Source: Selaginella moellendorffii (lineage: Eukaryota; Plantae; Lycopodiophyta). From it: 64,000 nucleotides of DNA. Position 1 is the first letter of the stretch; each line of letters starts with the position of its first letter. A model generated the notes under the pieces. That model saw nothing but the letters and a program-made list of their open reading frames with translations. It had not been told where the DNA came from and made no database searches. Of the stretch, positions 1,969 to 64,000 are shown one piece after another. Where the stretch lies: the NCBI RefSeq assembly GCF_000143415.4, contig NW_003314343.1, positions 789,334-853,333 on the forward strand, read 5' to 3'. The position numbers were made by a program, and so were the translations under genes.

Positions 1969-2289
1969 ACTTAAATTAAAAAAGGGAGGGTTTCTCTAAG
2001 ATGCCGCTCGATTGGAGGATGTGCCAGAAATTCCCTTCCCTCTGGCGGAAAATGTAGGCTATCGGTGCGTTCTTTCTGGAGAGCTCCGCTCAGTGCGTCT
2101 TGTTCTTGCAGATTTCTCGCGATTTCGACTTGGTTGTGATCTAAGGCCTGGGACAGGAGGCGAAGATTGTGGCGATTCCCGTCCTTGTTGCGGCGTTGAA
2201 GGCGTGTGGCAGCTCCGGCGACGTGGATCTCGCGACAAAAATCCATGGCGATGCAGCGGAGAGCGGGCACGATTTCTACGTTGCAAACA

Positions 2290-2800
2290 CGCTGGTGAGC
2301 TTGTATGGATAGTGTGTGGCAACTTGGTGGAAGCTGAGAGAGTTTTTACGGGGATGGTGGTCTCTTGGGCGGCACTGATGCTGGAAAGCGGGGAAGAGGC
2401 ACTGGCTTTACAGGCACCACTGTCATGGATGACAAATGACAGGACCTTTGTTGCTGCTCTTAAGGCATAGCAGGCAAGGAAGAAGGCAGCAAAGAGTTGG
2501 AAGATGGTTCGTGAAAGCAGGGACGCTGGAGAAAGGCATGGATCTCCGTTCTCAAGCTTCAGACAAGCATGAGCTAGATATATTCGTGGCCAGCTCGCTG
2601 ATCGACATGTACGCTATCGTTCGGTGTGGGTGAGTTTTCGCAGCATGACCTGGTTTCGCTGGTTTCGTTGATGCTGGGGTACTTGGAAAACGGCCAGCCA
2701 GACCTTGGTTACACAGATTGTGGAAGTTTATTGAACGCTCAGGGGCTCTTCCAGACCATAATCTGGCACTCTGGAACACGCTGATACTCGGGTATGCTGA
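2290..2800 (+). pseudogene. PLS-class PPR gene fragments
   Basis: CGNLVEAERVF..MVVSWAALM..GEEALAL..NDRTFVAALKA; LDIFVASSLIDMY; LWNTLILGYAEN. Interrupted by stops and frameshifts. Confidence 0.75.
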
Positions 2801-3200
2801 GAACGTAGTGGACGAGAAGATCGCCATCCCTCTCTCGACCAGCTCAGCATGGCTGCAAGCTGAGAGAGAACCGACGCGAAAGTGATCCCGTTCGGCTCTC
2901 ATTTCTTCTCGTCACGCATTTGATCGAAGAGCTCGCGAGCTTGTAGTTCCCTATCCCCCAATCAAAGCATTCGAGACTTCCACCCGGAGTCGAAAGCATG
3001 CCGAGCTTCCACCATGCCTCCACACTTCCCATACGTGTCCACCAGCGAGGTTCGTAAAACGCAACCGTGGATCCATCTCACGGCCTCCAAAGCCAACAGA
3101 TTCCCACAAGCCTTGAGTGCGGCCTTGAAGCTCTAGGAATCCAGCGAGAGATCTTCTTCACGTTGTTGCAGCCGCGAGAAAAGAAGGCCACAGATGGTTC
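2800..3200 (-). pseudogene. PLS-class PPR gene fragments (opposite strand)
   Basis: SFKAALKACGNLLALEAVRWIHGCVLRTSLVDTYGKCGGMVEAR; LSACSHAELVERGMAIF. Confidence 0.75.
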
Positions 3201-3359
3201 CCACTTGTGCGTGACTGATATGCGAGTTCTTGGAGTAGAGGTTCTTCACGTGGTTGTAGGTGCCGGTCTAAAAGTTTGGGAATCGGAGAAACTCTAACGT
3301 CGGAAGATTCTCTTCAGCTTTGCATTCACCAAAGGAGTCTCAAAACTGTTGTTAAACTT

Positions 3360-3640
3360 GCCTGAAGCTGATCGACAACAAGAGCACAGGGAATCGACCC
3401 GACCGTCTTCCACTTGTCTTGGAACTTAACTTGGACTCCCACGACATCATTTTCCTGCAAGAGAATGGTGAGACCACCAACGTCGGAATGACTGCTCAGT
3501 CTGATTGCGAGCTCGGGGCTCGGGCAAGGAGGATAATAGTTGAGTTCCAGCGCTGCTTGGTGCTTACCAAATTCCCTCTCGAGATAGTCGGAGCCTAAGC
3601 CCAGACCCTCAGACAATGCTCGCAGGAGATGCCATGGCTT
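3360..3640 (-). pseudogene. 2-oxoglutarate/Fe(II) dioxygenase fragment
   Basis: LLRALSEGLGL...LELNYYPPCPSPELAIRLSSHSDVGGLTILLQENDVVGVQVKFQDKWKTV (HxD motif). No flanking exons carrying the distal His/RxS motifs were found. Confidence 0.8.
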
Positions 3641-5214
3641 GATCCACAGCAACCAACCTGGATGATCCATAGAAAAAACTCTTTAGAGGAAGAAAATAAT
3701 GCTGCACTTCACGAGGACAAGAGCTTTGCGAAGCGCTTGGAGGACAATGGAGGATAAAATAAAAGGCTGGGGAATTAACTGTCTAGTGTGACCCCAAAGC
3801 TGGTTAGTTCTAAATATTGTCCACATGAATTACATTCATAACTGTTCCTGTTAATTCCTTGATACTGGTTTAGGGTAGCAGCTTCTGAAGGATGTGAGAA
3901 CATCACAGTGACTTTAGTCCATATAGAACACCAACAAGCAAGATAGATTTTGATGCTTCTCCTTTTTTCTCAGACTCTTTGTAGCTTAGGAGTATTTTAA
4001 ATATTTTTATAAAGTATAGTTTAACCAAATTGAGAAAACCAGATTAAAGATCAAAATTCATCTAAATAGGATGCTTTTGTATGATAGACTTTGCTAACTG
4101 CAAGTAGTCTTTATTGTAAACTCCAGAATGCAAACACTCCTCAACACCTATGAGTGCCTTCAGACTTTCCTCAACCTTTGCCTCATGATCTTGTGGCTAA
4201 ACAAAGGCAAAATCTTTATTTGGTTAAGGATTAAGATTTTTAGTTCAAAAAGTTGATTTGAACTATTAGTAAGAGTGTGATTGATAAAATTAAAAGATTA
4301 GTGGTTAAGAAAGGGCCACTAGAATCATTGAACGAAATCCAAATGGTAAAATTAGGTGAGGAACACTAATATGTTAGATGATAATGGATTGTGGGAAAGG
4401 CAATAGGATGGATTTTTAAAAGCTCCGATTTAGTGAAAGTGGAAGCTCTAAAGGAAGGAGTGACAAGGTAACCAAATGATAAGGCTGTGAATAACTGTAG
4501 CACAAATTATGATAATTGAAACTTAGTGTTAAAAGTGGCATAAAATAAAAAAGAGGATGATAGTGCCCTCAAATAAAGAACTTCCTAGGATAAGGAAGTG
4601 GAGTTTGCACAATATATACAATGCAAAGTGTCAAAGACACCCAAGAAATTGACTTTGAGAAGTTAAAATTCTAAAATGTAATAGTTATATCGATAAAAAC
4701 TAAAACTATTCAAGAATGAGTAATGGGATTGATATAGAGAAAGTGTCTTTTACGGGTTTAATGAGAACTAAATCAATAAAAGGAGAGAACCACCACAAAT
4801 AGTCGAATGAGTCTTTATATTGGAGAGACTATGCTCCTTAAAAGATAGGTAAAGTATGGTGAGCGTTCAGTGTCGAACCATCAACGAATATTGGCTTGGT
4901 GTTAAGGATGGAAAGGGTAATACTTGATAGTATTACTTTATAAAATGATTTATCATTCAATGAGGACATCGAACTTCATCTATGTGAAACACAAATCTCT
5001 AAACCCCAAAATGGAACCAAAAGGGTGTTATATGGTGGTGGCCAAAGCAGAAGCTAAATGAGTGTAACACATTTGGACCAAGAGCTCCGATTTGGATAGT
5101 TGAGAGTGGGAGTGAAACTCCCAATGAAGTGTTCAAGAACAAGCATGTAACAAGCAGTAAGCGAGTCTCTAAAAAAGGGACATAAGAGGACTAATACATA
5201 ACACATAGAAATGT

Positions 5215-5982: not shown

Positions 5983-6940
5983 TGTAGCGCACCTTATTTC
6001 TCTCCCCTTAAGCTAACTAGAAAAGGGGCAATTGCTTGATGAGAGAGCCCTTAGTAGCTATTTTATCCCCATTTATCCCCCAAGGTTCCAAGGATCCACG
6101 GTGACAGTATATCCATACAAAGTCCCACCTTATCTCTCTCCCCTTAAGCCAACTGGAAAAGGGGCAATTGCTTGATGAGAGAGCCCTTAGTGGCTATTCC
6201 TTCGTCCGTGGATACTCTACACAAGAGGAAGGACGTACGCATGGATGCCCAATACGTACAATTTCAAATTTAGGGGTAGGAATATACCTTGCTCAAGGGT
6301 ATATTATATTTCCATTTCCGCACTCAATCTACCAATCCTTCCATTGTGTAGACCAGCTATTCCATGTGAGGCAACTAGTCATCCACCCGTACCGCAGTCC
6401 CACAGTGGATACCTTCGTCCGTGCCCAATACGTACAATTTCAAATTTAGGGGTAGGAATATACCTTGCTCAAGGGTATATTATATTTCCATTTCCGCACT
6501 CAATCTACCAATCCTTCCATTGTGTAGACCAGCTATTCCATGTGAGGCAACTAGTCATCCACCCGTACCGCAGTCCCACAGTGGATACCTTCGTCCGTGG
6601 ATACTCCACACAAGAGTCCGTGGATACTCCACACAAGAGGAAGGACGTATGCATGGATGCCCAATACGTACGATTTCAAATTTAGGGGTAGAAATATACC
6701 TTGCTCAAGGGTATATTATATTTTAGGTAACCACTAATTAATGGGAATCGAACTTGTGCCATTTGCTCCAATACCAACTGTAGCGCACCTTATCTCTCTC
6801 CCCTTAAGCCAACTGGAAAAGGGGCAATTGCTTGATGAGAAAGCCCTTAGTGGCTATTTTATCCCCATTTATCCCCCAAGGTTCCAAAGATCCACGGTGA
6901 CAGTATATCTAAATCTCATCCCATGATCACATGCGCTACA
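5983..6940 (-). mobile_element. TRIM-like non-autonomous LTR element nested in the gypsy element
   Basis: Termini TGTAGCGCA...TGCGCTACA; identical 5-bp TSD GACTT (5978-5982 and 6941-6945); ~162-bp LTR at 6779-6940 with truncated copies at 5983-~6112 and ~6126-6197; tRNA-Met-like PBS (tggtattggagca on the minus strand) abutting 6779; no coding capacity. Confidence 0.88.
6245..6600 (+). repeat. 176-bp essentially perfect tandem duplication inside the TRIM, plus a partial third copy (~6657-6720)
   Basis: tgcccaatacgtacaatttcaaatttagggg...accttcgtcc occurs at ~6246 and ~6422. Confidence 0.9.
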
Positions 6941-38073: not shown

Positions 38074-39576
38074 AGATCCAGGTGTGGATCATAGAGATGA
38101 TCTAGCAGTGATTATCCAAATATACATACTCATTCATACACAGTCATATATAATTCTTTCCTCATGTGTGCGTGTGTCTGTCCACTTTCACTTTGAGGCT
38201 GAGGATGTTAAAAAGGAGAAATATGAAGCAACACCTAGGGTATATGGATGTGAAACACAAAAGTCTCACTCCCTCCAGATACCTGATCACTTGGCTAATG
38301 AAATTTAATCTCCCTGTGGATGCTAGAAACACCCTCCCAATGACTGTTTGTGATACATGCAAAGAATTTTCCTAAGGATTCCAGAGCACACCTGGGAACT
38401 CGCAGCCTCCAGCTGATTGTACTGGCATAACAGTGAGCCAGTAACTTGGTTTTGGAAATTTGGAAGCTGGAGCAAAGTGTTGAGAGTTAGAGATGCAAGC
38501 ATGATTGGGTGAGTGCTCTCAAAATTGAAATCCTAACCACGAGTGGCAAACAAAAGAGGAGCATACCTAATTGCATAGGCTTCACGAGCTGATGGTGAGA
38601 GCTGAAAAGAATTTCACATCCTAGTCTTCAATGCTTCATTCATATCTGCTGAAGAATTTTCCTTTTCACTGGTCTTTTTTCCTTGATAGTTTTAGGGCGG
38701 AGAAAGGTTGCATTTGTTATGGGCGCTGTGGATTTGATGATTCGGGTCGCTGTGTGTAGCATCCTCCAGAGTATCGAGGTAAATCAGCTTCCATCCTGGA
38801 TAATGAATTAGCGTTCGCTCGCCAGAGAGTCCAGAATGACCAGGTTGACAGGAGGATCTTGCCTCCAAGTGGATGTAAGTCATCGAATAATGAATGATCA
38901 AGAAATGTTTTTGTCACTCGCAAATTTTGATTTTGCGAGCATACCCTATCTATGCCATCATCCAAGAGGTGAGCCCATTTGCACCACCTTACGTCTCTTT
39001 GCAGGCCGGAGTGGAGAACGGCTTCGAGCAGGCTTCTGTGGTTTTCTTTGCCCTTCGACTTTTCTTGCCACAAGATACATCGCCCGCACCACCTGTCCAT
39101 TGTCTTGCACTACATCGCGTCTGGAAAGGTGCTCCGAAAACAAAAGCTCATGTTTGTTCGTTTGGTAGATGCACATCAGTCGCGAGTCGTGAGTCTATTA
39201 TAACTAAAGTCGACTGTTTGGTTATCCCATGCACAATGCTCACCAGTGCCACGTAAAAGACTGCAGTTGATACTGTGATCAACAGAAACAAGGAAAAGCT
39301 TCTCGCGGAGCTATATGCTGCCTTTAAAGTGCGCTTTTTTTCATAATGTAAGTCGACTTTTTCTGATCAACTTCCAGTGCAGCTTTACTGGCGCCACGCT
39401 GAGCACTCTCTACGAGCTGCTGCGGGAGAAAATCCGGGAGGCACACAAATCCAGAAAGAGCAACAAAGGTCGTGTTGCCGAGCAGGACTTGGATCTCATT
39501 TCCGACCGCCCTGGACAACACGGGGCCTCACGATAGGCTTTGATACGAAATGCTCTACGAACAGCTCTCTTGTGAG
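38074..39576 (+). pseudogene. Degenerate intron-containing gene remnant 'X' of unknown family (repeated at ~48155-49538 and ~51790-53488)
   Basis: Three diverged copies with exon-like blocks bounded by GT/AG, e.g. NELAFARQRVQNDQVDRRILPPSG|gtaag, TVINRNKEKLLAELYAAFKVRFFHN|gtaag, cag|FTGATLSTLYELLREKIREAHKSRKSNKGRVAEQDLDLISDRP. Stops and indels in all copies. Confidence 0.45.
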
Positions 39577-40899
39577 TAAATATTCTAGAATACTTTACTA
39601 TCTAATGGTTGTTATTTATTTAGATTAATTTTGTATTTATAAATTGTAAACATGTTTATAATTATAAACTTCCATTTGATTAATTGGATTAATATATAGG
39701 AATAACACTACTACTAAGAAAATCAAGTGTTGTTGCGTATAACATATTATTATTGCATGAATTGACTTAAGCTATATAAGTAAGTAGCAAATCAAGTTTT
39801 AAAATTGACATATTTATATTTTCTCAAATTAAATAGATTTATGTAGCCCTTTTCCTTGAAGGGCAATAAAATAGATTATTCTTTCAGAATATTTTTTTCT
39901 TTTCTAAAGGATGAATGAATATTCCAAATGTGATGAATTTCTCTATCCATTTTGTTAGTGTATAATTTTATATTCCATTTTTCTCTTACCACCTCTTTGG
40001 TATGGCAATGAATATAATTGTGTATATTTGTTATAATGCTTAAATTATTTATCATATGTAGATTTATTGTTTGTTTTGAGTTGTATACAAAAATATTATG
40101 CACACAATCACTTTTCAATTGCTATATTAGCAATCAAAATGTGATTATGTATATAATATTTTTGTCATGGGATATACCCTATATACATGGCGTGACATCC
40201 TATGCAAAACTAATCTCAAACAACATAAGATCACCACAAATCTAACAAACGGTTTTTTGTCTTGTATGATTGAGTGCAGATTTATAATCTCTTGATTGTG
40301 ATCATCTCTTTACTCTTATTTCACACAACTGTGGCTCATTTCTTATAATTTAGAAGCATAATTTTATTGTAGCATTCCCTTGGTCCCCACATCATATGTT
40401 GCAAGAAAAGCATTTAAACCACAATAACACTCTTGAGGTGATACACCCCTTCCTAACCTCCTAATTTATAGTTTTGAGATATTAGTGCAATGTACATTGG
40501 TGTAAGTTTTTGAATTTTTATTTTCTGGGAGATCACCCAACCCAATATTATTCAAAATATCCCAAAATTCTTAACTAATTAAAAAAAGATTGCCTCTACT
40601 TTCTATATTTGAATTCTTATAGATTTAATTACCCCACTATGCCCTAATGTCATTCCACACACAATATTTCATTTTCAATCAACATAATATATTCTATTAC
40701 TGTTTACATAGTCTCAGATTTAGGAATCGGGCAATTTCTTTTGCAGCTCTGGCGTCCTTTTTGCCAGTGTTAAAGCTGACATATAGCATGTGAATACGTA
40801 CTACGGTATGCACAAAGCTTTACCGCAAGCATACACGTAGCTCAATATCGACATAAAAGACACAAAAGTCCTAAAAGGTAGTGCATGCGTCACAATGCA

Positions 40900-41170
40900 T
40901 CCTTTCTCAACTTGGAGATACCAGTTATTTAAGAACACTTGAAAGATGTACGTTTCTGAGGACAACCAGGCAATTCCATGCCCGAGCGGGGGAGGAGCTA
41001 CTGGACGTGGCTCCTTGTCCCAGTTCGGAGAGCTCACCGAGACGAAGCGAAGCTCGTGTTTGATCGCCGTCGTGGGTCTCTGCGTACGCCCGCTTCGAAT
41101 GCCCCCAGCAGCCCCCGAGGATCGAGATGGTGTCTCCTGGACTGCCGTAATCGCAGAGCTCTCTCAAAAC
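40900..41170 (+). pseudogene. PPR fragment inside the inverted repeat (also at ~51490-51740 and ~55350-55600)
   Basis: LTETKRSSCLI..MPPAAPEDRDGVSWTAVIAELSQN / EAKLVFDR resemble the PPR motif A+.VFD.M..RD.VSWTA.I. Confidence 0.55.
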
Positions 41171-41469
41171 TATCGCCTCCAGGACACAACACAATACCGA
41201 CCGCAAAGTTTAGACAAGACAATAACATCATAGTCCTCGCAGTGGTTGAGCTTCACCATCTCAGTGAAGTTCTTGAGCGGGTTGGCGTCCTCTTCTTGTC
41301 CGTCAGACTCTGCTTCATGGCGATGGCATCAGGGAGCTCTACATTGTTAATAGATGCACTAGTCGGTAGCCACGATCTTCTATCAATCTTTCCTCACGAC
41401 ATTCTAGGGAGGAAATAGAAACCTTATTATAACAACCTTTGCGATGTAGGCAAAGAAACATAGAGTCAA

Positions 41470-41887
41470 TCATGCACACCATCCACCAACACCGAGGACT
41501 GCTATGCAGTGGAGCCCCGAACAGCACTGTACTCCCCTTGGAATATAGAACGGTGCACAACTCTTGCCCTTGCCGGCACAATTCTCATTCAAGGTGAGAG
41601 CTAGATCCCCATGATCATCTTCTGCATCACACAGAATCTTAGTGACCAAAAGAGCCAATGAAACCTCACACTCACCAGTGTTAACAGGATGATCTTCAGC
41701 GAAGCCAGCTACCTCCTGGTTCTGCCGAGTTATGTCGTAAACCTCTTCTCCTGCAGCACAGGGAATGTCAGTGACCAAGAAACCGGAGCCACATCTCACA
41801 CTCACCGATATTAGCAGGACGAGCAGATGCCATAAACATTGCCATGGTGCATGCTACAGCAAGAAAAAGAGTAAAGCGGAGAGCCAT
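41470..41887 (-). CDS. Secreted pre-pro-peptide with inhibitor-cystine-knot (knottin) mature domain, copy 1 (102 aa)
   Basis: Exons 41887-41806, 41750-41676, 41621-41470 with two phase-1 GT-AG introns splice in frame to MALRFTLFLAVACTMAMFMASARPANI-GEEVYDITRQNQEVAGFAEDHPVNT-EDDHGDLALTLNENCAGKGKSCAPFYIPRGVQCCSGLHCIAVLGVGGWCA*. Spacing C-x6-C-x10-CC-x4-C-x9-C. TATA box at ~41946-41953; alternative ATG at 41893. Confidence 0.85.
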
Positions 41888-42103
41888 TGGCATGAGACTG
41901 GATACAACCGATTGAATGAGCGCTAGGAATCATAGAAGCCTACAGTTTATATATTCTAGAGCTGGTTGTATTTAAAACGTGCTGCTGCAAGCAGCCAATT
42001 ATATTGAGCCACGTGTATGCTAGCTGTAAAACGTTGTACATAACGTAGTACGTATTCACATGCTATATGTCAACTTTAACACTGACGCCAGAGCTGCAAA
42101 AGA

Positions 42104-42188
42104 AATTGTCCGCATTGTGACACTGAGACTATGTAAACAGTAATAAATTGTCCGCATTGTGACACTGAGACTATGTAAACAGTAATAA
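42104..42188 (+). repeat. 42-bp tandem duplication in the right inverted-repeat arm
   Basis: aattgtccgcattgtgacactgagactatgtaaacagtaata occurs twice (42104, 42146). Confidence 0.9.
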
Positions 42189-43940
42189 AATATATTATGT
42201 TAGTTGAAAATGAAGTTGGTGATGAATTTGAGGTGGGTAATTTTATTTGACCATTTTTGAAAAGGGTAGAAATTTGTTTTTAAGGGCTAACCTTCAAAAC
42301 AAAGAAACTTTTAAAATACAAAAGCTTAAAGATTTTGAAAGTTCTTTTCTTGTCCTTGACTGTCAAGTGGCTCTTGTTGGGTAGTGGGGATAGTTCTTCC
42401 TTAGGCTTACCTTAGTTATTCTCATATAAAATGTGTGAGTCACTTGGTAATACAAGGGGAAGTGTACCTCAATTTGGCAAAACATTGCAAAATATATGAA
42501 AAAAATTAAATATATGTGTGTTTAAATTATTGTAATACACATGTGTGACTCACAAAATTATACAACTTTTTTTTACGTATGGGCATGCAATAATGCCTTT
42601 CTAAGTTAGTGTCACATATACAATTTTCTACGCTATATTTGACTCAATGTCAAATTTTTTAATATGTTAGAAGGGTTTACACTTTGGGTTAGGGCTTGTA
42701 GTTGTGATGTTTAAAACAATTCGATCTATAAGAATTCAAATATAGATGGTAAGGGCACATTTGGAATACTCATTCATCCTTTAGAAAAGAAAAAATATTC
42801 TGAAAGAATAATCTATTTTATTGCCCTTCAAGGAAAAGGGCTACATAAATCTATTTAATTTGAGAAAATATAAATATGTCAATTTTAAAACTTGATTTGC
42901 TGCTTACTTATATAGCTTAAGTCAATTCATGCAATAATAATAATAATGTATTGCGTGCTGCATGCAGCAACACTTAATTTTCTTAGTAGTAGTGTTATTC
43001 CTATTGATTAATCAAATTAATCAAATGGAAGTTTATAATTGTAAACATGTTTACAATTTATAAATATAAGAGTAATCTAAATAAATAACAGCCATTAGAT
43101 AGTAAAGTATTCTCGAATATTTAAATATATTCTAGGTATATTCACTACCACACCCAAATTAAACTATTATGAAGTAATATTAAAAGTAGCATCTCGAATG
43201 GAGAAAAACTAGTTAGAGTCATGTTGGCAAAAAACAACTCAGAAAGGAATCTTTAGTAAGACATTGATTGAGATCAATCTTCTCTAAAGTCATATTAAAA
43301 CCCAGGGTTTAAATCAGCCACTCAAGAAATTTTAGAAAAGTAAAATTAAAGAATAAAAGGCAAATTAACATACAATTTGGACTGCTTCAACCACTATAGA
43401 GAATATTATATACATATGGAAGGCGCGCGCCGCGCAACCTCCACTCCTTTCGCAGCACGCACTTGTGTTTTTGCTTCTCTCATCGCAACCAACTGAGAAG
43501 AGCTCCCTCGGGTTGGGCGCCTGTGCCCGGGAAACGGCCTTAAGACCGTTAACGGACACGTGGAATAACGTGATTCGAGGATGAGAGGGTTTCTCTAGAA
43601 CTGGCAGCTGGTAGCTGGGTTTTGGAGAACCTGGCAGTTGTTAGCCTTCTCGCAGAGAACCTGACATCATCCGACGGCTGCCAACGGCTAGATCAAGTTA
43701 ACGGGCGAGCCACAGCCCGTTAAGAGAGGAGGTCCAGGCAGCGCCAGATTGATTACGAGCTGCTAGATCTGGGGGATGTTGCCAGAGATTTGTGTGTTCT
43801 TCCTGTAGCAGCTCTAAGAGGGAGAGGGAGAGGGAGAGGGAGAGAGAGGGGAGGCGAGAGGGGGAGAGGGGGAATGGATTCTTTCAATCCGTTCCAGGAG
43901 GAGGTGGGCGGGGGGGGGCATCCAGAGCACGTTTGCGGAC

Positions 43941-47313: not shown

Positions 47314-49538
47314 TACTAAATTTATAAAGTGAGCCTATTGAATGGTTTGTAAATTAAGACCTACTGTGTTCCTGAAGTGCCATTTGTAGCAACACCCAGT
47401 AATCACATAGACGTGGATCCCAATATGTCAGAGTCTATCAGGTTGGAGTTGTTTTATTTTGTTTGTGGTGGGCATGATGTTATTAGGAGCTGCATTTCGC
47501 AGTACATGTTCCATGCAGCACTTCTTCCTTCCCTCAGCTTGCACTTGGCAAGTCTACCACGCGGATGGAGGTCGACCCTCCAGCCAGTTTAGCAACACAA
47601 GAACAAGGTGGCGGTGGTGGTTGTGGTGGTGGTGCTCGTGTACATTGCCACATAGGAATCCATGTCAAGCTACAGTTGCACCTGGTGGTGAAGATGTAGA
47701 ATTGTTTCCTGTTGAACAATTGGAAAAGTAATGGATGTATCTAGATGTTCATGGATAACAGGAGTACTCCTCCACTCTTTCACAGCATGCTGTGTGGAGT
47801 TGATGGAGGATGAATGGTTGGTTTATATTCATTTTCTTTTGTGTTGTTAATGTTACTAAGGTGATCGTCTTCGTGGATTCAGGTTTAACAATCTCCTCCA
47901 TTCACTGCTTTATTGTCAATGTTTGGCAACATCTTTATAGTGCCACTTATGCAAGTTTCTAGTCCATTTGAATTGGTCATATATAATTTGATGGGCCATT
48001 TTCATAGGGGGTGTTATTATATTGTCATTGTATCTGATTACTTTATTCAATGAGTTGAGGTGTGTACACCTTGCAACATAATTTGAAAACCTGAGTATAT
48101 CCTTTCAACTCAAGATTGTGAAAAGTGCTCAACATATGAATCTCTCTTTTCTCCCTATGGATGCTAGAAACACCCTCCCAATGATCAATGATTGTGACTG
48201 TTTATGACACATGCAAAGAATTTTCCTAGGGATCCCAGAGCACACTTGGGAACTTGCAGCTTCCAGCTTCCAGCTGGCATAACAGTGAGCCAGTAACTTG
48301 GTTTTGGAAATTTGGAAGTTGGAGCAAAGTGTTGAGAGTTAAAGATGCAAGGATGATTGCTGAGTGCTCTCAAAATTGAAATCCTCGAGTAGCAAACTAG
48401 TGGAAGTCCAAAAGAGGAGCATACCTAATTGCATAGGCTTCACGAGCTGATGGTGAGAGCTGAAAAGAATTTCAATGCTTCATTCATATCAGATATTCCT
48501 GCTGAAGCCTTTTCCTTTTCACTTGTCTTTTTCCCTTGATTGTTTTAGGGCGGAGAAAGGCGATGGAAACGGTGGTATCGGTGGTGGAGTTCATGAAAGC
48601 AGCCCGTGAAGCCTGACTGGATGGAAGTATGGATATAAGGGTACTAGACCTGAGTTGGAAGAGATTGACAGGAAGGAAAAGGAGCAGTCAGCATTGTACA
48701 GGGAAGTGTATTTGGCACTATTTGCTCCAATATGGGCGCTGTAGATTTGATGATTCGGGTCGCTGTGTGTAGCATCCTGAGGTAAATCAGGCTCCATCCT
48801 GGATAATGAATTAGCGTTCGCTCGCCAGAGAGTACAGAATGGCCAGGTTGACAGGAGGATCTTGCCTCCAAGTGGATGTAAGTCATCTAATAATGAATGA
48901 TCAATAAATGTTCTTGTCACTCGCAAAATTTGATTTTGCGAGCATACCCTACCTATGCCATCATCCAAGAGGTGAGCCCATTTGCACCACCTTACGTCTC
49001 TTTGCAGGCCGGAATGGAGAACGGCTTCGAGCAGTGGTTTTCTTTGCCCTTCGACTTTTCTTGCCACAAGATACATCGCCCGCACCACTTGTCCATTGTC
49101 TTGCGCTACATCGCGTCTGGAAAGGTGCTCCGAAAACAAAAGCTCATGTTTGTTCATTTGGTAGATGCGAGTCGCAAGTCTATTATAAGTAAAGTCGACT
49201 GTTTGGTTATCCCATGCACAATGCTCACCAGTGCCACGTAAAAGACTGCAGTTGATACTGTGATCAACAGAAACAAGGAAAAGCTTCTGGCGGAGCTATA
49301 TGCTGCCTTTAAAGTGCGCTTTTTTTCATAATGTAAGTCGACTTTTTCTGATCAACTTCCAGTGCAGCTTCACGCTGAGCACTCTCTACGAGCTGCTGGG
49401 GGAGAAAATCCGGGAGGCACACAAATCCAGAAAGAGCAACAAAGGTCGTGTTGCCGAGCAGGACTTGGATCTCATTTCTGACCGCCCCACGGGGTCTCAC
49501 GATAGGCTTTGATACAAAACGAAGAGCTCTCTTGTGTG

Positions 49539-51322
49539 TAAATATTCTAGAATACTTTACTATCTAATGGTTGTTATTTATTTAGATTAATTTATATTTA
49601 TAAATTGTAAACATGTTTATAATTATAAACTTCCATTTGATTAATTGGATTAATATATACTACTAAGCAAATCAAGTGTTGTTGCGTATAACATATTATT
49701 ATTGCATGAATTGACTTAAGCTATATAATTAAACAGCAAATCAAGTTTTAAAATTTACATACTTATATTTTCTCAAATTAAATAAATTTATGTAGCCCTT
49801 TTCCTTGAAGGGGATTAAAATAGATTATTATTTTAGAATATTTTATAATATTTTTTGGATGAATGAATATTCCAAACGTGATGAATTCCTCTATCCATTT
49901 TGTTAGTGTATATTTTTATATTCCATTTTTCTCTTACCATCTTTGGTATGGCAATGAATATAATTGTGTATATTTGTTATAATGCTTAAATTATTTATCA
50001 TATATAGATTTATTGTTTTTTTTTGAGTTGCATACAAAAATATTATGCACACAATCACTTTTCAATTGCTATATTAGCAATCAAAATGTGATTATGTATA
50101 TAATATTTTTGTCATGGGATATACCCTATATACATGGCATGACATCCTATGCAAAACTAATCTCAAACAACATGAGGTCACCACAAATTTAACAATCACT
50201 TTTTTGTTTTGTATCATTGAATGCAGATTTATAATCTCTTGATTGTGATAATCTCTTTACTCTTATTTCACACAACTGTGGCTCATTTCTTATAGTTTAG
50301 AAGCATAGTTTTATTGTAGCATTCCCTTGGTCCCCACATCATATGTTGCAAGAAAAGCATTTAAACCACAATAACACTCTTGAGGTGATACACCCTTTCC
50401 TAGCCTCCTAACTTATAAAAATGAGATATCAGTGCAATGTACATTGGTGTAAGGTTTTGAATTTTCATTTTCTGGGAGATCACCCAACCCAATAATTCAA
50501 ACCCAAATATCCCAATATTTTTAACTAATTAAAAAAAGATTGCCTTTACCCTCTATATTTGAATTCTTATAGATCTATTTTTTTTGTTACTTACAATTAA
50601 TCCACTCCAAATAAGGAGGCAAGATCCTTTATTCAGTATTTTTTATTCAAAAATATAACTACAAGTCCTAACCCAAACTCTAAACCCTTTTGACATATAA
50701 AATTTTTTTAATGTTGATTCAAATGTAGTGTAGAAAATTGTATATATGGCACTAATTTAGAAAGGCACCATTGTATGCCCATACATAAAAAAAAGCTGTG
50801 TTTTAAAGTATAATTTTGTGAGTCATGTGTATTATAATAATTTAAACAAACATGTATTTGCTTTTTTTCATATATTTTGCAATATTTTGCCAAGCTGCCC
50901 ACCTAAGGTACACTTCCCCTCATATTACCAAGTGACTCACACATTTTATGTAAGGATAATCAAAGTAAGCTTAAGGAAGAACCATCCCCACTACCAAACA
51001 AACTTGACAGTCAAGGACAAGAGAAGAATTTTCAAAATCTTTAAGCTTTTGCATTTTAAAAGTTTCTTTGTTTTGAAGGTTAGCCCTTAAAAAAAAAATT
51101 CTACCCTTTTGAAAAATGGTTAAAAAAATTATTTTCTTTACCCCACTATGCCCTAATGTCATTCCACACACAATATTTCATTTTCAAATAACATAATATA
51201 TTCTATTACTGTTTACATAGTCTCAGATTTAGGAATCGGACAATTTCTTTTAAAGCTGACATATAGCATGTGAATACATACTATGGTAAAGCTTTACAGC
51301 AAGCATACACTTAGCTCAATAT
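49539..51322. repeat. Full-length (~1.8 kb) left-type arm of the inverted-repeat element in a partial cassette copy lacking knottin, bHLH and kinase
   Basis: Same outer and inner termini as 39577-40848; near-identical to 53489-55265. Confidence 0.85.
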
Positions 51323-51361: not shown

Positions 51362-51461
51362 NNNNNNNNNNNNNNNNNNNNNNNNNNNNNNNNNNNNNNN
51401 NNNNNNNNNNNNNNNNNNNNNNNNNNNNNNNNNNNNNNNNNNNNNNNNNNNNNNNNNNNNN
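51362..51461. other. Assembly gap (100 N)
   Basis: Run of N. Confidence 1.
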
Positions 51462-53488
51462 CTAGGGTAAAAATAGATTTTATCCTTTCTCAACTTGGAG
51501 ATACTAGTTATTTAAGAACACTTGAAAGATGTACGTTTCTGAGGACAACCAGGCAATTCCATGCCCGAGCGGGGGAGGAGCTACTGGACGTGGCTCCACC
51601 ACTCCTTGTCCCAGTTCGGAGAGCTCACCGAGACGAAGCGAAGCTCGTGTTTGATCGCCGTTGCTTCGAATGCCCCCAGCAGCCCCTGAGGATCGAGATG
51701 GTGTCTCCTGGACTGCCGTAATCGCAGAGCTCTCTCAAAACTGGGATTAAGCATTGAGTAGTCGATAGCCACGAACTTCTATCAAATTAAGATCCAGGTG
51801 TGGATCATAGAGATGATCTAGCAGTGATTATCCATATATACGTACATTCATATACAGTCATATATAATTCTTTCCTCATGTGTGCGTGTGTCTGTGCACT
51901 TTCACTTTGAGGCTGAGGATGTTAAAATGGAGAAATATGAGGCAACACCTAGGGTATATGGATGTGAAACACAAAAGTCTCACTCCCTCCAGATACCTGA
52001 TCACTTGGCTAATGAAATTTAATCTCCCTATGGATGCTAGAAACACCCTCCCAATGATCAATGATTGTGACTGTTTGTGACACATGCAAAGAATTTTCCT
52101 AGGGATCCCAAACCACACCTGTCCTCCCAAGCTAGTGTTAGGGCCATAAACACCCGTGTCCAGGCTCCTAGGCTGACTCGTTCCCGAAACTCACAGCTTC
52201 CAGCTGATTGTACTGGCATAACAGCGAGCCAGTAACTTGGTTTTGGAAATTTGGAAGCTGGAGCAAAGTGTTGAGAGTTAGAGATGCAAGGATGATTGGC
52301 TGAGTGCTCTCAAATTGAAATCCTAACCATGAGTAGCAAACTAGTGGCTATGCAATTAGGTACGCTCCTCTTTTGAACTTCAAGCTGATGGTGAGAGCTG
52401 AAAAGAATTTCACATCCTAGTCTTCAATGCTTCATTCATATCAGATATTCCTGCTGAAGCCTTTTCCTTTTCACTTGTCTTTTTCCCTTGATAGTTTGGC
52501 ATCGGTGGTGGAGTTCATGAAAGCAGCCCGTGAAGCCTGACTGGATGGAAGTATGGATATAAGGATACAGCTAAATCGCAAGAGGAGTTGGAAGAGATTG
52601 ACAGAAAGGAAAAGGAGCAGTCAGCATGGTACAGGTTGGCACTATTTGCTCCAATTGGGTTTGTTATGGGTGCTGTGGATTTCATGATTCGGGTCGCTGT
52701 GTGTAGCATCCTCCAGAGTATCGAGGTAAATCAGGCTCCATCCTGGATAATGAATTAGCGTTCGCTTGCTACAGGTTGACAGGAGGATCTTGCCTCCAAG
52801 TGGATGTAAGTCATCGAATAATGAATGATCAAGAAGTGTTTTTGTCACTCGCAAAATTTGATTTTGCAAGCATACCCTACCTATGCCACCATCCAAGAGG
52901 TGAGCCCATTTGCACCACCTTACGTCTCTTTGCAGGCCGAAATTGAGAACGGCTTCGAGCAGGCTTCTGTGGTTTTCTTTGCCCAGTAACAAGATACATC
53001 ACCCGCACCACCTGTCCATTGTCTTGCGCTACATTGCGTCTGGAAAGGTGCTCCGAAAACAAAAGCTCATGTTTGTTCGTTTGGTAGATGCACATCAGTT
53101 GTGAGTCGCGAGTCTATTATAAGTAAAGTTGACTATTTGGTTATCCCATGGACAATGCTGACCAGTGCCATGTAAAAGACTGCAGTTGATACTGTGATCA
53201 ACAGAAACAAGGAAAAGTTTCTGGCGGAGCTATATACTGCCTTTAAAGTGCGCTTTTTTTCATAATGTAAGTCGACTCTTTCTGATCAACTTCCAGTGCA
53301 GCTTTACTGGCGCCACGCTGAGCACTCTCTACGAGCTGCTGGGGGAGAAAATCCGGGAGGCACACAAATCCAGAAAGAGCAACAAAGGTCGTGTTGCCGA
53401 GCAGGACTTGGATCTCATTTCTGACCGCCCCACGGGGTCTCACGATAGGCTTTGATATGAAATGCTCTACAAACAGCTCTCTTGTGTG

Positions 53489-56400
53489 TAAATATTCTAG
53501 AATACTTTACTATCTAATGGTTGTTATTTATTTAGATTAATTTATATTTATAAATTGTAAACATGTTTATAATTATAAACTTCCATTTGATTAATTGGAT
53601 TAATATATACTACTAAGCAAATCAAGTGTTGTTGCGTATAACATATTATTATTGCATGAATTGACTTAAGCTATATAATTAAACAGCAAATCAAGTTTTA
53701 AAATTTACATACTTATATTTTCTCAAATTAAATAAATTTATGTAGCCCTTTTCCTTGAAGGGGATTAAAATAGATTATTATTTTAGAATATTTTATAATA
53801 TTTTTTGGATGAATGAATATTCCAAACGTGATGAATTCCTCTATCCATTTTGTTAGTGTATATTTTTATATTCCATTTTTCTCTTACCATCTTTGGTATG
53901 GCAATGAATATAATTGTGTATATTTGTTATAATGCTTAAATTATTTATCATATATAGATTTATTGTTTTTTTTTGAGTTGCATACAAAAATATTATGCAC
54001 ACAATCACTTTTCAATTGCTATATTAGCAATCAAAATGTGATTATGTATATAATATTTTTGTCATGGGATATACCCTATATACATGGCATGACATCCTAT
54101 GCAAAACTAATCTCAAACAACATGAGGTCACCACAAATTTAACAATCACTTTTTTGTTTTGTATCATTGAATGCAGATTTATAATCTCTTGATTGTGATA
54201 ATCTCTTTACTCTTATTGCACACAACTGTGGCTCATTTCTTATAGTTTAGAAGCATAGTTTTATTGTAGCATTCCCTTGGTCCCCACATCATATGTTGCA
54301 AGAAAAGCATTTAAACCACAATAACACTCTTGAGGTGATACACCCTTTCCTAGCCTCCTAACTTATAAAAATGAGATATCAGTGCAATGTACATTGGTGT
54401 AAGGTTTTGAATTTTCATTTTCTGGGAGATCACCCAACCCAATAATTCAAACCCAAATATCCCAATATTTTTAACTAATTAAAGAAAGATTGCCTTTACC
54501 CTCTATATTTGAATTCTTATAAATCTATTTTTTTTCTTTGTTACTTACAATTAATCCACTCCAAGGAGGCAAGATCCTTTATTCAGTAGTTTGTCCTCCA
54601 ACATCCAAAAAGGCATTCAAAATATAATTACAAGCCCTAACCCAAACTCTAAACCCTTCTGACATATTAAAAAAATTAACGTTGATTCAAATGTAGTGTA
54701 GAAAGTTGTATATATGGTACTAATTTAAAAAAGCACCATTGAATGCCCATACATAAAAAAAAGTTGTGTTTTAAAGTATAATTTTGTGAGTCACACATGT
54801 GTATTATAATAATTTAAACACACATGTATTTGTTTTCTTCATATATTTTGCAATGTTTTGGCAAGCTGCCCACTTAAGGTACACTTCCCCTCATATTACC
54901 AAGTGACTCACACATTTTATGTAAGGATAACTAAAGTAAGGTTAAGAACCATCCCTACTACCCAACAAAAGCCACTTGACAGTCAATGACAAGAGAAGAA
55001 CTTTCAAAATCCTTAAGCTTTTGCATTTTAAAAGTTTCTTTGTTTTGAAGGTTAGCCCTTAAAAAAAAATTTCTACGCTTTTCAAAAATGGTAAAAAAAA
55101 TTATTCTCTTTACCCCACTATGCCCTAATGTCATTCCTCACACAATATTTCACTTTCAAATAACATAATATATTCTATTAGTGTTTAAATAGTCTCAGAT
55201 TTAGGAATCGGACAATTTCTTTTAAATGCACAGAGCTTTACAGCAAGCATACACGTAGCTTAATATCGACATAAAAGACACAAAAGTCCTAAACAGGTAG
55301 TTCATGCGTCACAATGCCTTTCACTTTTGCATTAAAAATAGATTTTATCCTTTCTCAAATTGGAAATACTAGTTATTTAAGAACACTTGAAAGATGTCCG
55401 TTTCTGAGGACAACCAGGCAATTCCATGCCCGAGCGGGGGAGGAGCTACTGGACGTGGCTCCACCACTCCTTGTCCCAGTTCGGAGAGCTCCCCGAGACG
55501 AAGCGAAGCTCGTGTTTGATGGCCGTCGCTTCGAATGCCCCCAGCAGCCCCTGAGGATCGAGATGGTGTCTCCTGGACTGCCATAATCAGAGCTCTCTCA
55601 AAACTATCGCCTCCAGGACACAACACAATACCGACCGCAAAGTTTAGACAAGACAAAAACATCATAGTCCTCGCAGTGGTTCAGCTTCACCATCGCATTG
55701 AAGTTCTTGAGCGGGTTGGCGTCCTCTTCTTGTCCGTCAGACTCTGCTTCATGGCGATGGCAGCAGGGAGCTCTACATTGTTAATAGATGGGATTAAGCG
55801 TTGAGTAGTCGGTAGCCACGAACTTCTATCAATCTTTCCTCACGACATTCTAGGGAGGAAATAGAAACCTTATTATAACCTTTGCGATGTAGGCAAAGAA
55901 ACATAGAGTCAATCATGCACAGAATCCACCAACACCAAAGATGACTGCCACGCAGTGGAGCCCCGCACAGCACTGTACTCCCTCTGGAACATAGAACGGT
56001 GCACAGCTGTGGCCCTTGCCGGCACAACTCTTCAAGGTGAGAGCTGGATCCCCATGATCATCTTCTGCATCACACAGAATCTTAGTGACCAAAAGAGCCA
56101 ATGAAACCTCACACTCACCAGTGTTAACAGGATGATCTTCAGCGAAGCCAGCTACCTCGTTCTGCCGAGTTATGTCGTAAACCTCTTCTCCTGCAGCACA
56201 GGGAATGTCAGTGACCAAGAAACCGGAGCCACATCTCACACTCACCGATATTAGCAGGACGAGCAGATGCCATAAACATTGCCATGGTGCATGCTACAGC
56301 AAGAAAAAGAGTAAAGCGGAGAGCCATTGGCATGAGACTGGATACAACCAATTGAATGAGCGCCAGGAAACTTGGAAGCCTATAGTTTATATATTCTAGG

Positions 56401-57868
56401 GCTGATTATATTTATAATGTGCTGCTGCATGCAACCAATTATATTGAGCTACGTGTATGCTTGCTGTAAAAATTGTACATAACCACGTGCTATATGTCAG
56501 CTTTAACACTGGCACAAAGGACGCCAGTTCTTTTCTTGTCCTTGACCATCAAGTGGCTCTTGTTGGATAGTGGGGATGGTTCTTCCTTAAGCTTACCTTA
56601 ATTATCCTCACATAAAACATGTGAGTCACTTGGTAATATAAGGGGAAGTGTACCTTAGGTGGGCAACTTGGCAAAACATTGCAAAATATATGTGTTTAAA
56701 TTATTGTAATATACATGTGTGACTCACAAAATTATACTTTAAAACACAACTTTTTTTATGTATGGGCATGTAATGGTGCCTTTCTAAGTTAGTGTCACAT
56801 ATACAATTTTCTACACTACATTTGACTCAATGTCAAATTTTTTAATATGTTAGAAGGGTTTACACTTTGGGTTTGATATTTAAAACAATTCAATCTATAA
56901 GAATTCAAATATAGATGGTAAGGGCAAATTGTTTTTTAATTAATTAAGAATTTTCAGATATTTGGGTTTGAATAATATTGGGTTGGATGATTTCCTATTC
57001 AAAAACTTACACAAATGTACATTGCACTAATATCTCAATACTATAGGTTAGGAGGCTAGGAAGGGGTATATCCTCTCAAGAGTGTAATTGTGGTTTAAAT
57101 GCTTTTCTTGCAACACATGATGTGAGGACCGAGGGAATGCTACAATCAAATTACGCTTCTAAATTATAAGAAATGAGCCATAGTTGCATGAAATAAGAGT
57201 AAAGAGATAATCATAATCAGCAGATCACAAATTTACATGCAATGATACAGGACAAAAAAATGATTATTAATCTATAATGACCTCATGTTGTCTAAGATCA
57301 GTTTTGCATAGGATATCACACCATGTATATAGGGCATATCCCATGATAAAAATATTATACATATAATCACATTTTGATTGTTAATATAGCACTTGAAAAG
57401 TGATTGTGTACATAATATTTTTGTATGCAACTCAAAACAAAAAAAGAATTTGCATATGATAAATAATGTAAGCATTATAAAAAATATACACAATTATATT
57501 CATTGCCATACCAAAGAGGTGGTAAGAGAAAAATGGAATATAAAAATATACACTAACAAAATGGGTAGAGAAATTCATCACATTTGGAATGCTCATTCAT
57601 CCTTTAGAAAAGAAAAAAATATTCTGAAAGAATAATCTATTTTATTGCCCTTCAAGGAAAACGGCTACATAAATCTATTTAATTTGAGTTCATGCAATAA
57701 TAATATTAATAGCAACACTTGATTTGCTTAGTAGTAGTGTTATTCCTATTTATTAATCAAATTAATCAAATGGAAGTTTATAATTATAAACATATTTACA
57801 TCTTATAAATACAAGATTAATCTAAATAAATAACAACCATTGGATAGTAAAGAATTCTAGAATATTTA
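53489..57868. repeat. Second complete inverted-repeat element (arms ~53489-55265 and ~56441-57868) enclosing a PPR fragment and knottin copy 2
   Basis: Same termini as the first element; right end GATAGTAAAGAATTCTAGAATATTTA. Confidence 0.85.
55913..56327 (-). CDS. Secreted pre-pro-knottin, copy 2
   Basis: Same 3-exon structure and identical signal exon; mature end LTLKSCAGKGHSCAPFYVPEGVQCCAGLHCVAVIFGVGGFCA* (C-x6-C-x10-CC-x4-C-x10-C); frame intact. Confidence 0.85.
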
Positions 57869-62071: not shown

Positions 62072-63312
62072 TACTAGCCTATTGAATGGTTTGTAAATTA
62101 AGACCTTTGTAGCAACACCTAATAATCACATAGACGTGGATCCCAATACGTTGGAGTCTATCAAGTTGGAGTTGTTTTATTTTGTTTGTGGTGGGCATGA
62201 TGTTATTAGGAGATGCATTTCGCAGTACATGTTCCATGCAGCACTTCTTCCTTCCCCCAGCTTGCACTTGGCAAGTCTACCATACGGATGGAGGTCCCTC
62301 CAGCCAGTTTAGCAACACAAGAACAAGGTTGCGGTGGTGGTCGTGCTCGTGTACACAGTTGCACCGGGTGGTGAAGATGTAAAATTGTTTCCTGTTGAAA
62401 AATTGGAAAACTAATGGATGTATCTAAAGTTTCAAAAGGCTCCTCTGATGTTCATGGATAACAGGATTACTCCTCCACTCTTTCACAGCATGCTGTGCGG
62501 AGTTGATATTCATTTTCTTTTGTGTTGTTAATGTTACTAAAGTGATGGTCTTCATGGATTCAGGTTTAATAATCCCCTCCATTCACTCCTTCATTGTCAA
62601 TGTTTGGCAACATCTTTATAGTGCCATTTATGCAAGTTTTTAGTTCAATTGAATTGGTCATATACAACTTCATAGGCCATTTCCATAGGGGGTATCATTA
62701 TATCATCATTGTATTTGATTACTTTAGTCTGTGGGTTGAGGTGTGTATACCTTGTAACATGGTTTGAAAACTTGAGTGTATCCTTTCAAATCAAGATTGT
62801 GAAAAGCATTGACACAATTTTCCTTTACATAGGTTTATAATTATGAATCTCTCTTTTAAAAGTAGGTTTTATTTATAATTTTCTTTTATATAAAAGTGAT
62901 TTAAATGGGTCTTAAAATAAATTTCTAAAACTAAGATTTGTGTATATTCTAAAGATGATTTATAAAGTTTGTATAAATCTATGGAGTAGGTTCACAAAAT
63001 TGATTTATAAATTTTTGGTTTTAAATAATTTTTAAAATTAAGTTATTTTAATTACAAAAGGTTTATTTAGTGTATTTATAAAAAAGATTATGTTATGGTC
63101 TATATGATATTATAAGAATATTTACTATGTAAAAATATAATAATTTTTTCAACTAGATAACTTTGTTTATAATTATATTTTAATGGCTGTATAAGAAAGT
63201 TTTTTCTGCTAATATAACAACTTAATTATTTAACCAACTAAAAGATAATTATATTCACTATAAAACTATAATTTAATTAATTTAATTGCTCTACGAACAG
63301 CTCTCTTGTGTG

Positions 63313-64000
63313 TAAATATTCTAGAATACTTTACTATCTAATGGTTGTTATTTATTTAGATTAATCTTGTATTTATAAATTGTAAACATGTTTCTAATTA
63401 TAAACTTCCATTTGATTAATTGGATTAATATATAGGAATAACACTACTACTAAGCAAATCAAGTGTTGTTGTGTATAACATATTATTATTGACTTAAGCT
63501 ATATAATTAAACAGCAAATCAAGTTTTAAAATTTACATACTTATATTTTCTCAAATTAAATAAATTTATGTAGCCCTTTTCCTTGAAGGGGATTAAAATA
63601 GATTATTCTTTCAGAATATTTTTTAATATTTTTTGGATGAATGAATATTCCAAATGTGATGAATTTCTTTATCCATTTTGTTAGTGTATATTTTTTATAT
63701 TCCATTTTTCTCTTACCACCTCTTTGATATGGCAATGAATATAATTGTGTATATTTGTTATAACGCTTAAATTATCTATCATATGTAGATTTATTGTTTG
63801 TTTTGAGTTGCATACAAAGATATTATGCACACAATCACTTTTTAATTGCTATATTAGCAATCAAAATGTGATTATGTATATAATATTTTTGTAGTGGGAT
63901 ATACCCTATATACATGGCATGACATCATAATCTCAAACAGCATGAAGTCACCACAAATTTAACAATCACTTTTTTGTCTTGTATCATTGAATGCAAATTT
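63313..64000. repeat. Start of a fourth left-type inverted-repeat arm, running off the window
   Basis: tgctctacgaacagctctcttgtgtgTAAATATTCTAGAATAC..., the same junction as at 39577, 49539 and 53489. Confidence 0.88.

Follow-up and report, generated by a model that had tools for sequence, protein, structure and literature searches.

To our knowledge, the plant knottins characterised so far all come from seed plants. Whether a short locus of the clubmoss Selaginella moellendorffii encodes a peptide of this kind is the question addressed here. The locus, hereafter gene A (LOC9629796), lies on the minus strand of a 64,000-nt stretch of contig NW_003314343.1 (assembly GCF_000143415.4, positions 789,334 to 853,333), which we call the window and in whose numbering the coordinates of gene A and its surroundings are given. 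An initial annotation made from the letters of the window had proposed at 41470-41893 a hidden three-exon gene, missed by the list of open reading frames (ORFs), for a secreted precursor of an inhibitor cystine knot (ICK) peptide. We found that gene A is a genuine, transcribed and correctly spliced gene. It belongs to a duplicated family and probably encodes a secreted precursor with a knottin-like mature peptide, for which a defence role is the most likely one.

Gene structure and predicted precursor

The three-exon model, with its coordinates and intron sizes, agreed with an exon-by-exon reading and with the database protein of the locus (Table 1). The exons were translated separately, and the full-length sequence is the database record returned by our search. 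Both introns are of phase 1, the split codons being Gly and Glu. Exon 1 gave 29 residues, among them Arg6, a hydrophobic core 15 residues long (mean Kyte-Doolittle value 2.16) and Ala-Ser-Ala before Arg25, features that point to a putative N-terminal signal peptide. Exon 2 gave an acidic piece of 24 residues, and exon 3 gave 49 residues, of which the final 36 form the six-Cys domain. The pro-region (44 residues) contains 11 acidic and 2 basic residues. The exon translations thus returned the proposed layout of signal, acidic pro-region and C-terminal six-Cys domain, and the C-C-CC-C-C framework had the proposed spacing (6/10/0/4/9, plus one C-terminal Ala). For the peptide from Cys1 to the end, the calculated oxidised mass was 3607 Da, with an isoelectric point of 8.7 and a net charge of +3.

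The gene was hidden only from a bacterial-style ORF list; it has been publicly annotated since the 2011 genome release (EFJ11445.1), and RefSeq gives two isoforms of a hypothetical protein without a Pfam domain. The mature region exactly matched one protein, the S. moellendorffii uncharacterized protein LOC9629796 isoform X2 (103 aa, XP_024517206.1), whose cluster mate is isoform X1 / SELMODRAFT_447040 (104 aa, P0002; EFJ11445.1, XP_002987609.1). The spliced product was identical with the S. moellendorffii database proteins P0001 and P0002, and isoform X1 equals the gene model that had been proposed from the letters. The source agrees with the non-seed plant that the initial annotation had given. 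The 104- and 103-aa isoforms arise from the NAGNAG acceptor of intron 2 (CAG|AAG), which leaves isoform X2 one Glu shorter; the upstream AG is the one used by the transcript contigs.

Intron 2 is in frame and stop-free, and the resulting open frame is the ORF 41470..41805; retention of this intron would lengthen the pro-region by 18 residues with the frame intact. The 3' end of exon 2 together with intron 2 duplicates the 3' end of exon 1 together with intron 1 (53 of 75 positions identical; repeat score 30 against a maximum of 5 after shuffling), which indicates that the pro-region grew through exon-intron duplication.

Transcripts and splicing

A search with the locus returned 20 runs holding part of it, each with about half of its words or fewer (0.46-0.55 in the top 14), as expected when exons are present and introns absent. 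In the assembled contigs of all four runs analysed (X1, X2, X6 and X11, from four different studies), both introns were cut out exactly at the predicted sites, with contig joints at 41805|41749 and 41676|41621. Single contigs spanned 41805-41921 or 41805-41924, then 41676-41749, then 41604-41621. The latter two pieces adjoined inside single contigs, and loose ends at 41622 read exon 2 sequence. Splicing and expression of the gene are thereby supported. Judged from the contig ends, the transcript extends roughly over 41924..41371. Summed contig depth, taken as mean_word_depth and no measure of expression, was ~10-19 over the exons in run X1, ~100-400 in X2, ~190-770 in X11 and ~1800-5200 in X6, and 0-50 in the flanks. 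Because the introns are present in the genomic sequence of gene A and in four further genomic copies, the intron-less contigs are best explained as mRNA.

Table 1. Coordinates of gene A, its relatives and repeats. Positions are those of the window, except for the Grifola domains, which are those of locus L006. UTR, untranslated region.
Feature	Position	Strand	Remarks
42-nt perfect tandem duplication, 2.1 copies	42103..42189		~200 nt upstream of gene A; promoter-proximal
TATA-like box TATATAAA	41953-41946	minus	22-32 nt upstream of contig 5' ends (41924, 41921), the value varying with the box end taken
5'UTR, approximate	41924..41894	minus	contigs of runs X1 and X2 extend to 41921 and 41924
Exon 1	41893..41806	minus	88 nt; ATG at 41893; phase-1 end; signal-like peptide and start of pro-region
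Signal-like peptide codons	41893..41822	minus	24 codons of exon 1
Intron 1	41805..41751	minus	55 nt; GT..AG (GTGAGT...GCAG); spliced out in contigs of 4/4 runs (joint 41749/41805)
Exon 2	41750..41676	minus	75 nt; acidic pro-region
Intron 2	41675..41622	minus	54 nt; GT..AG (GTGAGT...GCAG); NAGNAG acceptor
Exon 3	41621..41470	minus	terminal exon; TGA = 41472-41470
Exon 3, first part	41621..41581	minus	end of pro-region; Asn-Glu-Asn immediately precedes Cys1
Exon 3, predicted mature domain	41580..41473	minus	36 residues, C-x6-C-x10-CC-x4-C-x9-C-A; net charge +3; hypervariable among paralogs
Stop codon and 3'UTR, end approximate	41472..41371	minus	contig 41371..41536 in run X1
Gene B (paralog), SELMODRAFT_447042 / LOC9629800	56333..55913	minus	P0007, 103 aa; same three-exon structure
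Family member LOC112343373			P0008, 115 aa; locus L002; more divergent; pro-region with insertion
Family members LOC9654912 and LOC9654360			P0011; loci L003 and L004, ~26 kb apart
Family member LOC112341459			P0013; locus L005
Family member SELMODRAFT_445429			P0014
~1.9-kb repeat copies	38713-40621, 48731-50574, 52660-54521, 63284-64000		
~1.9-kb repeat, inverted pieces	56887-57688, 42756-43123		
Grifola six-Cys domains, locus L006	8514-8618, 9174-9286, 10188-10295	plus	
Grifola six-Cys domain, locus L006	16394-16290	minus	

A duplicated family with divergence confined to the mature domain

Gene A belongs to a small, fast-evolving family of at least six annotated loci. P0007, P0008 and P0011-P0014 are members, and those beyond P0007 were added by profile search and cluster look-ups. 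The assembly presumably holds two haplotypes, so some of these members may be alleles. Contamination as the source of the plant genes was ruled out, as five loci lie on four scaffolds and have common plant-type introns. Gene B lies 14.4 kb from gene A within the window, and the two are contained in a segmental duplication (~38.0-48.1 kb vs 51.8-62.8 kb, offsets 13.7-14.8 kb, 83-95% identity). A run of 100 N (51362-51461), an assembly gap, stands between the duplicated segments, so their exact arrangement is not fully assembled. In one contig of run X6, 3 nt of exon 2 are missing (at 41716). This contig is most likely the transcript of gene B, the only copy that is 3 nt shorter in that part of the exon, which suggests that gene B is expressed too.

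When five close genomic copies were aligned, the first two exons, the two introns and the 3'UTR each had 0-3 substitutions. Exon 1 was identical across the five copies save 1 nt in the copy at locus L005, and the 3'UTR differed by 0-1 substitutions. The mature domain had 4-13 substitutions per 105-108 nt. Between genes A and B, the difference between the mature domain and the introns plus 3'UTR was significant (p = 4e-6, Fisher's test), and 21 of 156 positions of the 5' flank differed. The region from the 5'UTR to intron 2, together with the pro-part of exon 3 and the 3'UTR, was significantly more conserved than the flanks (p = 2e-7). The mature-domain changes of gene B and of the copies at loci L003 and L005 were almost all amino-acid changing, with 4-7.5 nonsynonymous vs 0-0.5 synonymous changes. 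The variable sites fell in loop 1 (Lys/His), in loop 2, where one codon reads Arg, Glu, Lys or Gln depending on the copy, and in loop 4 right after the CC pair (Ser/Ala/Glu). Further ones were an Ile/Val site after Cys5 and sites in the last loop, among them the residue preceding Cys6 (Trp, Phe or Val). We read this pattern as two processes: gene conversion or very recent duplication would preserve the precursor, and diversification, partly by selection, would be limited to the mature domain.

Homologs in a fungus

An exhaustive HMMER search with the 104-aa protein against 1.84 billion representatives gave five matches at E <= 0.001: its own cluster, P0003, P0004, the tick protein P0005 and A0H81_12613 of the fungus Grifola frondosa (maitake). 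The last one (80 aa, E 6.4e-4, a borderline value) was the only credible relative outside Selaginella in this search. P0003 and P0004, long repetitive proteins that matched only the pro-region, were judged spurious. The tick protein, which lacks the CC pair and matched through three repeats of one short stretch, was judged not homologous. It is a hypothetical protein of 336 aa from Rhipicephalus appendiculatus (KAL1473077.1), its three repeats together scoring E 5e-5, and these repeats resemble the end of the pro-region and loops 1-2 (D-N-C-A-G-x4-C ... P-F-L-I-P); it may be a mis-annotated tandem array or a chance match.

A0H81_12613 shared 57% identity with Selaginella P0008 over 42 ungapped residues, with CCEGLTCVA and GVGGWC in common, and hhalign aligned the Selaginella set with the Grifola set at a probability of 98.9% (E 2.6e-17). 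On this sequence comparison, the six-Cys proteins of Grifola and Selaginella are true homologs. Their common pattern is C-x6-C-x9/10-CC-x4-C-x9/10-C with G-x-SC, P-x-Y, CC-x-G(L/V)-x-C and G-(V/L)-G-G-x-C, and the six Cys plus 18-25 further columns were conserved across the Selaginella copies and in the fungus. Translated searches over 20 kb revealed a four-copy Grifola cluster, with the extra copies within 8 kb; three copies are intact and one is degenerate, its second Cys being replaced. In each intact copy the final residues are GGWCW, and a putative intron comes immediately after them, ahead of the stop. A0H81_12613, an uncharacterised small secreted protein, resembles the Selaginella proteins in its Cys spacing and GVGGWC end; it too has a signal peptide and a pro-region, here a short one, which is interrupted by a phase-1 intron. 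It differs in its GC-rich codons, its shorter pro-region and a C-terminal Trp instead of Ala; its intron lies 4 codons before Cys1, compared with 14 in gene A (more in P0008), and its annotated model reaches the stop codon through a second intron. Contamination as the source of the fungal match was ruled out, since the Grifola genes lie on a 600-kb contig among ordinary fungal genes.

A word-index search with the mature region returned only its own record, and one with the Grifola protein returned only itself; the latter also missed known relatives and hence has little bearing on other fungi. Two metagenome scans with the family patterns gave no matches. It is possible, though on balance doubtful, that the knottin-like family passed horizontally between an Agaricomycete fungus and the Selaginella lineage, in either direction, and then grew by tandem and segmental duplication in the clubmoss, diversifying in its mature domain as a new class of lycophyte defence peptides. 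Transfer from fungus to plant would be the slightly likelier direction, since the Grifola copies differ more among themselves.

Predicted fold of the mature domain

The six-Cys C-C-CC-C-C arrangement, contained in 36 residues, was kept in all Selaginella and Grifola copies. In the Pfam scans, the best scores were 16.6 and 15.3 bits (cut-offs 25.1 and 27), and the weak matches were all to ICK families, namely Conotoxin (PF02950), Toxin_7 (PF05980), Toxin_24, Tachystatin_A and Toxin_12 (PF07740). Among PDB sequences, a single-sequence query gave wrightide R1 as the best match (E 0.62), with CA-KG...QCC...HC...GG-CA in common. A profile that included the fungal relatives gave 19 matches at E <= 10, all 19 of which were ICK peptides, including gurmarin (best, 0.044), cyriotoxin-1a, bidentatide, asteropsins, wrightide, hainantoxin and psalmotoxin.

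Structure predictions were made with AlphaFold (AF2). From 6 sequences the mean confidence (predicted local distance difference test, pLDDT) was 61, and from 8 sequences it was 79.3, with short strands and a C-terminal beta-hairpin at 27-30/34-37. The top Foldseek neighbours of the better model were mostly ICK peptides, such as agelenin, MCh-1, amaranth AAI, asteropsins, DkTx and tachystatin (template modelling score 0.6-0.74, root-mean-square deviation (rmsd) 1.8-2.5 Å, 33-38 columns; best E 0.09). These matches were without significance, as expected for only 38 residues. The ESM Atlas shape search returned generic small disulfide domains, for example IGFBP, Kazal and CBM1, and ESM Atlas feature searches gave scores of ~0.8, which is chance level. 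The ICK-like fold proposed in the initial annotation is consistent with the PDB profile matches and with the fold neighbours of the better model. Taken from the Cys framework and the model, the mature domain most likely folds as an inhibitor cystine knot (knottin).

A hevein-like chitin binder was ruled out: Chitin_bind_1 gave no match at E <= 10, and the aromatic chitin-binding motif is missing, with CC followed by S/A/E-G-L-H/T and no aromatic pair. Plant and fungus have the strongly hydrophobic last loop (V/I-A-x-I/L-x-G-V-G-G-W) in conserved form, and this loop is therefore probably a functional face or structural core.

Proposed function and alternative explanations

In the pathway that we propose, a signal peptide of roughly 24 residues would direct co-translational entry into the endoplasmic reticulum (ER) and secretion, and a three-disulfide ICK-type core would form in the ER. 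The acidic 44-residue pro-region would be lost by cleavage before Cys1, at an Asn|Cys site in this copy, to release a mature peptide of ~3.6 kDa. Signal cleavage, pro-peptide processing, the disulfide knot and a biological activity are steps that we infer only. The most likely role, to which we give an even chance, would be that of a secreted defence peptide (antimicrobial, anti-herbivore or enzyme-inhibiting). It is favoured because the family forms tandem multigene arrays and has diversified in the mature peptide alone, and because transcripts were recovered by four studies, traits characteristic of defence or toxin peptides.

Several observations weigh against the reading of gene A as a secreted knottin-like defence peptide. 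No Pfam family reached the gathering score when the exon 3 product, the ORF with intron 2 retained and six mature domains were scanned; no statistically significant match was obtained among PDB sequences or folds, and a wide VIA-align search found nothing. The RNA label of the four runs is a guess, and no DNA control was among them. Compared with the other copies, gene A had a dN/dS of 0.8-1.5 with a dS near 0.11-0.13, unlike its introns; since this dS has no counterpart in the introns, gene conversion of the flanking parts would contribute alongside or instead of positive selection. Net charge across the family ranged from +3 to -1, and a simple cationic antimicrobial mechanism is therefore not conserved. 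Asparaginyl endopeptidases use an Asn|Cys site on angiosperm knottin precursors, and this site was found only in gene A, its paralogs having Lys-Ser|Cys or Asn-Ser|Cys.

The main alternative is that the peptide is a secreted signalling or reproductive ligand, akin to the rapidly evolving cysteine-rich peptide (CRP) ligands of plants. A secretory precursor and fast, amino-acid-changing divergence of the mature part would suit recognition ligands equally well, and the absence of a conserved family charge agrees with such a role. We nevertheless regard it as unlikely, because the contig depth (in itself no expression measure) was far above that of the flanks in all four runs and studies, the scaffold resembles protease-resistant ICK peptides, and a homologous cluster occurs in a fungus, which has no plant receptors. 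Another explanation concerns the fold itself: the six Cys could be bonded in a non-knotted pattern, so that the peptide would belong to another structural class and be no true knottin. Jasmintides (I-V, II-IV, III-VI) and beta-ginkgotides are six-Cys plant peptides with other connectivities (PMC6042386), which is why the knot is something we infer, and the lack of significance of the fold matches and the low confidence of the first model point the same way. The central-CC C-C-CC-C-C motif, however, is that described for cystine-knot alpha-amylase inhibitors and for 6C-hevein-like peptides, knotted in both cases (PMC6042386), the PDB profile matches were ICK peptides throughout, and the better model superposes on ICK structures (rmsd ~2 Å, 33-38 columns), so that we consider a non-knotted peptide very unlikely.

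The short length of gene A, its lack of a Pfam domain, its annotation as hypothetical only and its repeat-rich, duplicated surroundings might suggest an artefact of annotation or assembly, or a pseudogene copy in decay, without a functional product. The chance of this is close to negligible: the frame is intact, the splice sites are canonical, a TATA box is present, and the Selaginella copies and the fungus have kept the six Cys and many other alignment columns. The spliced contigs from four studies already largely refute this reading.

A pattern of conserved precursor and hypervariable toxin is known from venoms. A compact plant example of this venom-type mode is offered here, where signal, pro-region and introns have stayed almost the same and the mature domain diverges. 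An abundant, stable 3.6-kDa disulfide-rich peptide with natural surface hypervariability would be a candidate both for a bioactive compound and for a grafting scaffold. Through the close fungal homologs, gene exchange between plant and fungus, or a far wider hidden distribution of the family, becomes directly testable; a transfer, if true, would be a rare instance of a toxin-like ribosomal peptide scaffold common to plant and fungus at ~57% identity. The importance would be greater if the peptide were detected and active, or if the plant-fungus transfer were confirmed. In the literature searched, no paper was found that mentions these loci by name or reports a knottin family from a lycophyte; a transcriptome survey reported a motif-predicted cyclotide (cyclic knottin) in Selaginellaceae (PMC7168108). 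Gene A is best described as an already annotated but uncharacterised gene of a new sequence family within the well-known knottin kind and, as far as could be found, this is the first such family described in a lycophyte.

Other features of the window

The ~1.9-kb repeat (85-92% identity), probably a transposable element or the long terminal repeat (LTR) of one, occurs four to six times in the window and borders the duplicated knottin segments. A perfect direct repeat lies at 6246-6599 (offset 176 nt, 100% identity). At locus L004, a bHLH-MYC_N gene adjoins the knottin copy. One contig of run X11 skipped 52 nt at the tandem duplication upstream of gene A, and the copy number of this duplication may therefore vary between individuals or copies. 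Downstream of gene A, contigs were found over 40900-41330 at low depth (6-50) in three runs, and one contig of run X11 linked 40900 to 42001 on opposite strands, which points to a further transcript, or to a rearranged copy at another genomic site.

Comparison with known peptides

Among the closest known peptides are the angiosperm 6C knottins of the cystine-knot alpha-amylase inhibitor/roseltide type (AAI, wrightide R1, allotides and roseltides). Like gene A, these have the C-C-CC-C-C framework with six residues in loop 1 and four after the CC pair, and a precursor in which signal and pro-domain precede a mature peptide at the very C-terminus. Wrightide R1 also shares the start CA-KG and the end GG-CA with the Selaginella peptide. 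Angiosperm knottin precursors are cut at Asn|Cys (PMC5171801), a junction matched here in this copy only. The similarity in sequence was not significant (for wrightide R1, E 0.62 with the single sequence and 0.97-1.3 with profiles), and loop 2 has 5-7 residues in the angiosperm peptides but 10 in the Selaginella peptide. The last loop of the latter (9-10 residues) is a conserved hydrophobic, Gly-rich motif (V-A-x-I-x-G-V-G-G-W) unlike that of the angiosperm knottins, and the host here is a lycophyte.

The best profile and fold neighbours were gurmarin, bidentatide and the spider and sponge ICK peptides (cyriotoxin-1a, asteropsins, agelenin), which share the core G-x-SC ... CC-x-GL-x-C and the predicted triple-strand or hairpin architecture. 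With E > 0.04 throughout, shorter loops, and unrelated organisms and precursors, the resemblance to these peptides is at the level of the superfold only. On the fungal side, the secreted rust effector MLP124266 / AvrP4 combines a flexible N-terminal half with a cystine knot (I-IV, II-V, III-VI) at the C-terminus (PMC6889267). It has an extra helix, and no sequence relationship to the Selaginella family was detected. As far as the authors of that study knew, no knottin-like structure had been reported for a fungal protein before MLP124266 (PMC6889267); we cite it only as an indication that knottins occur in Basidiomycota.

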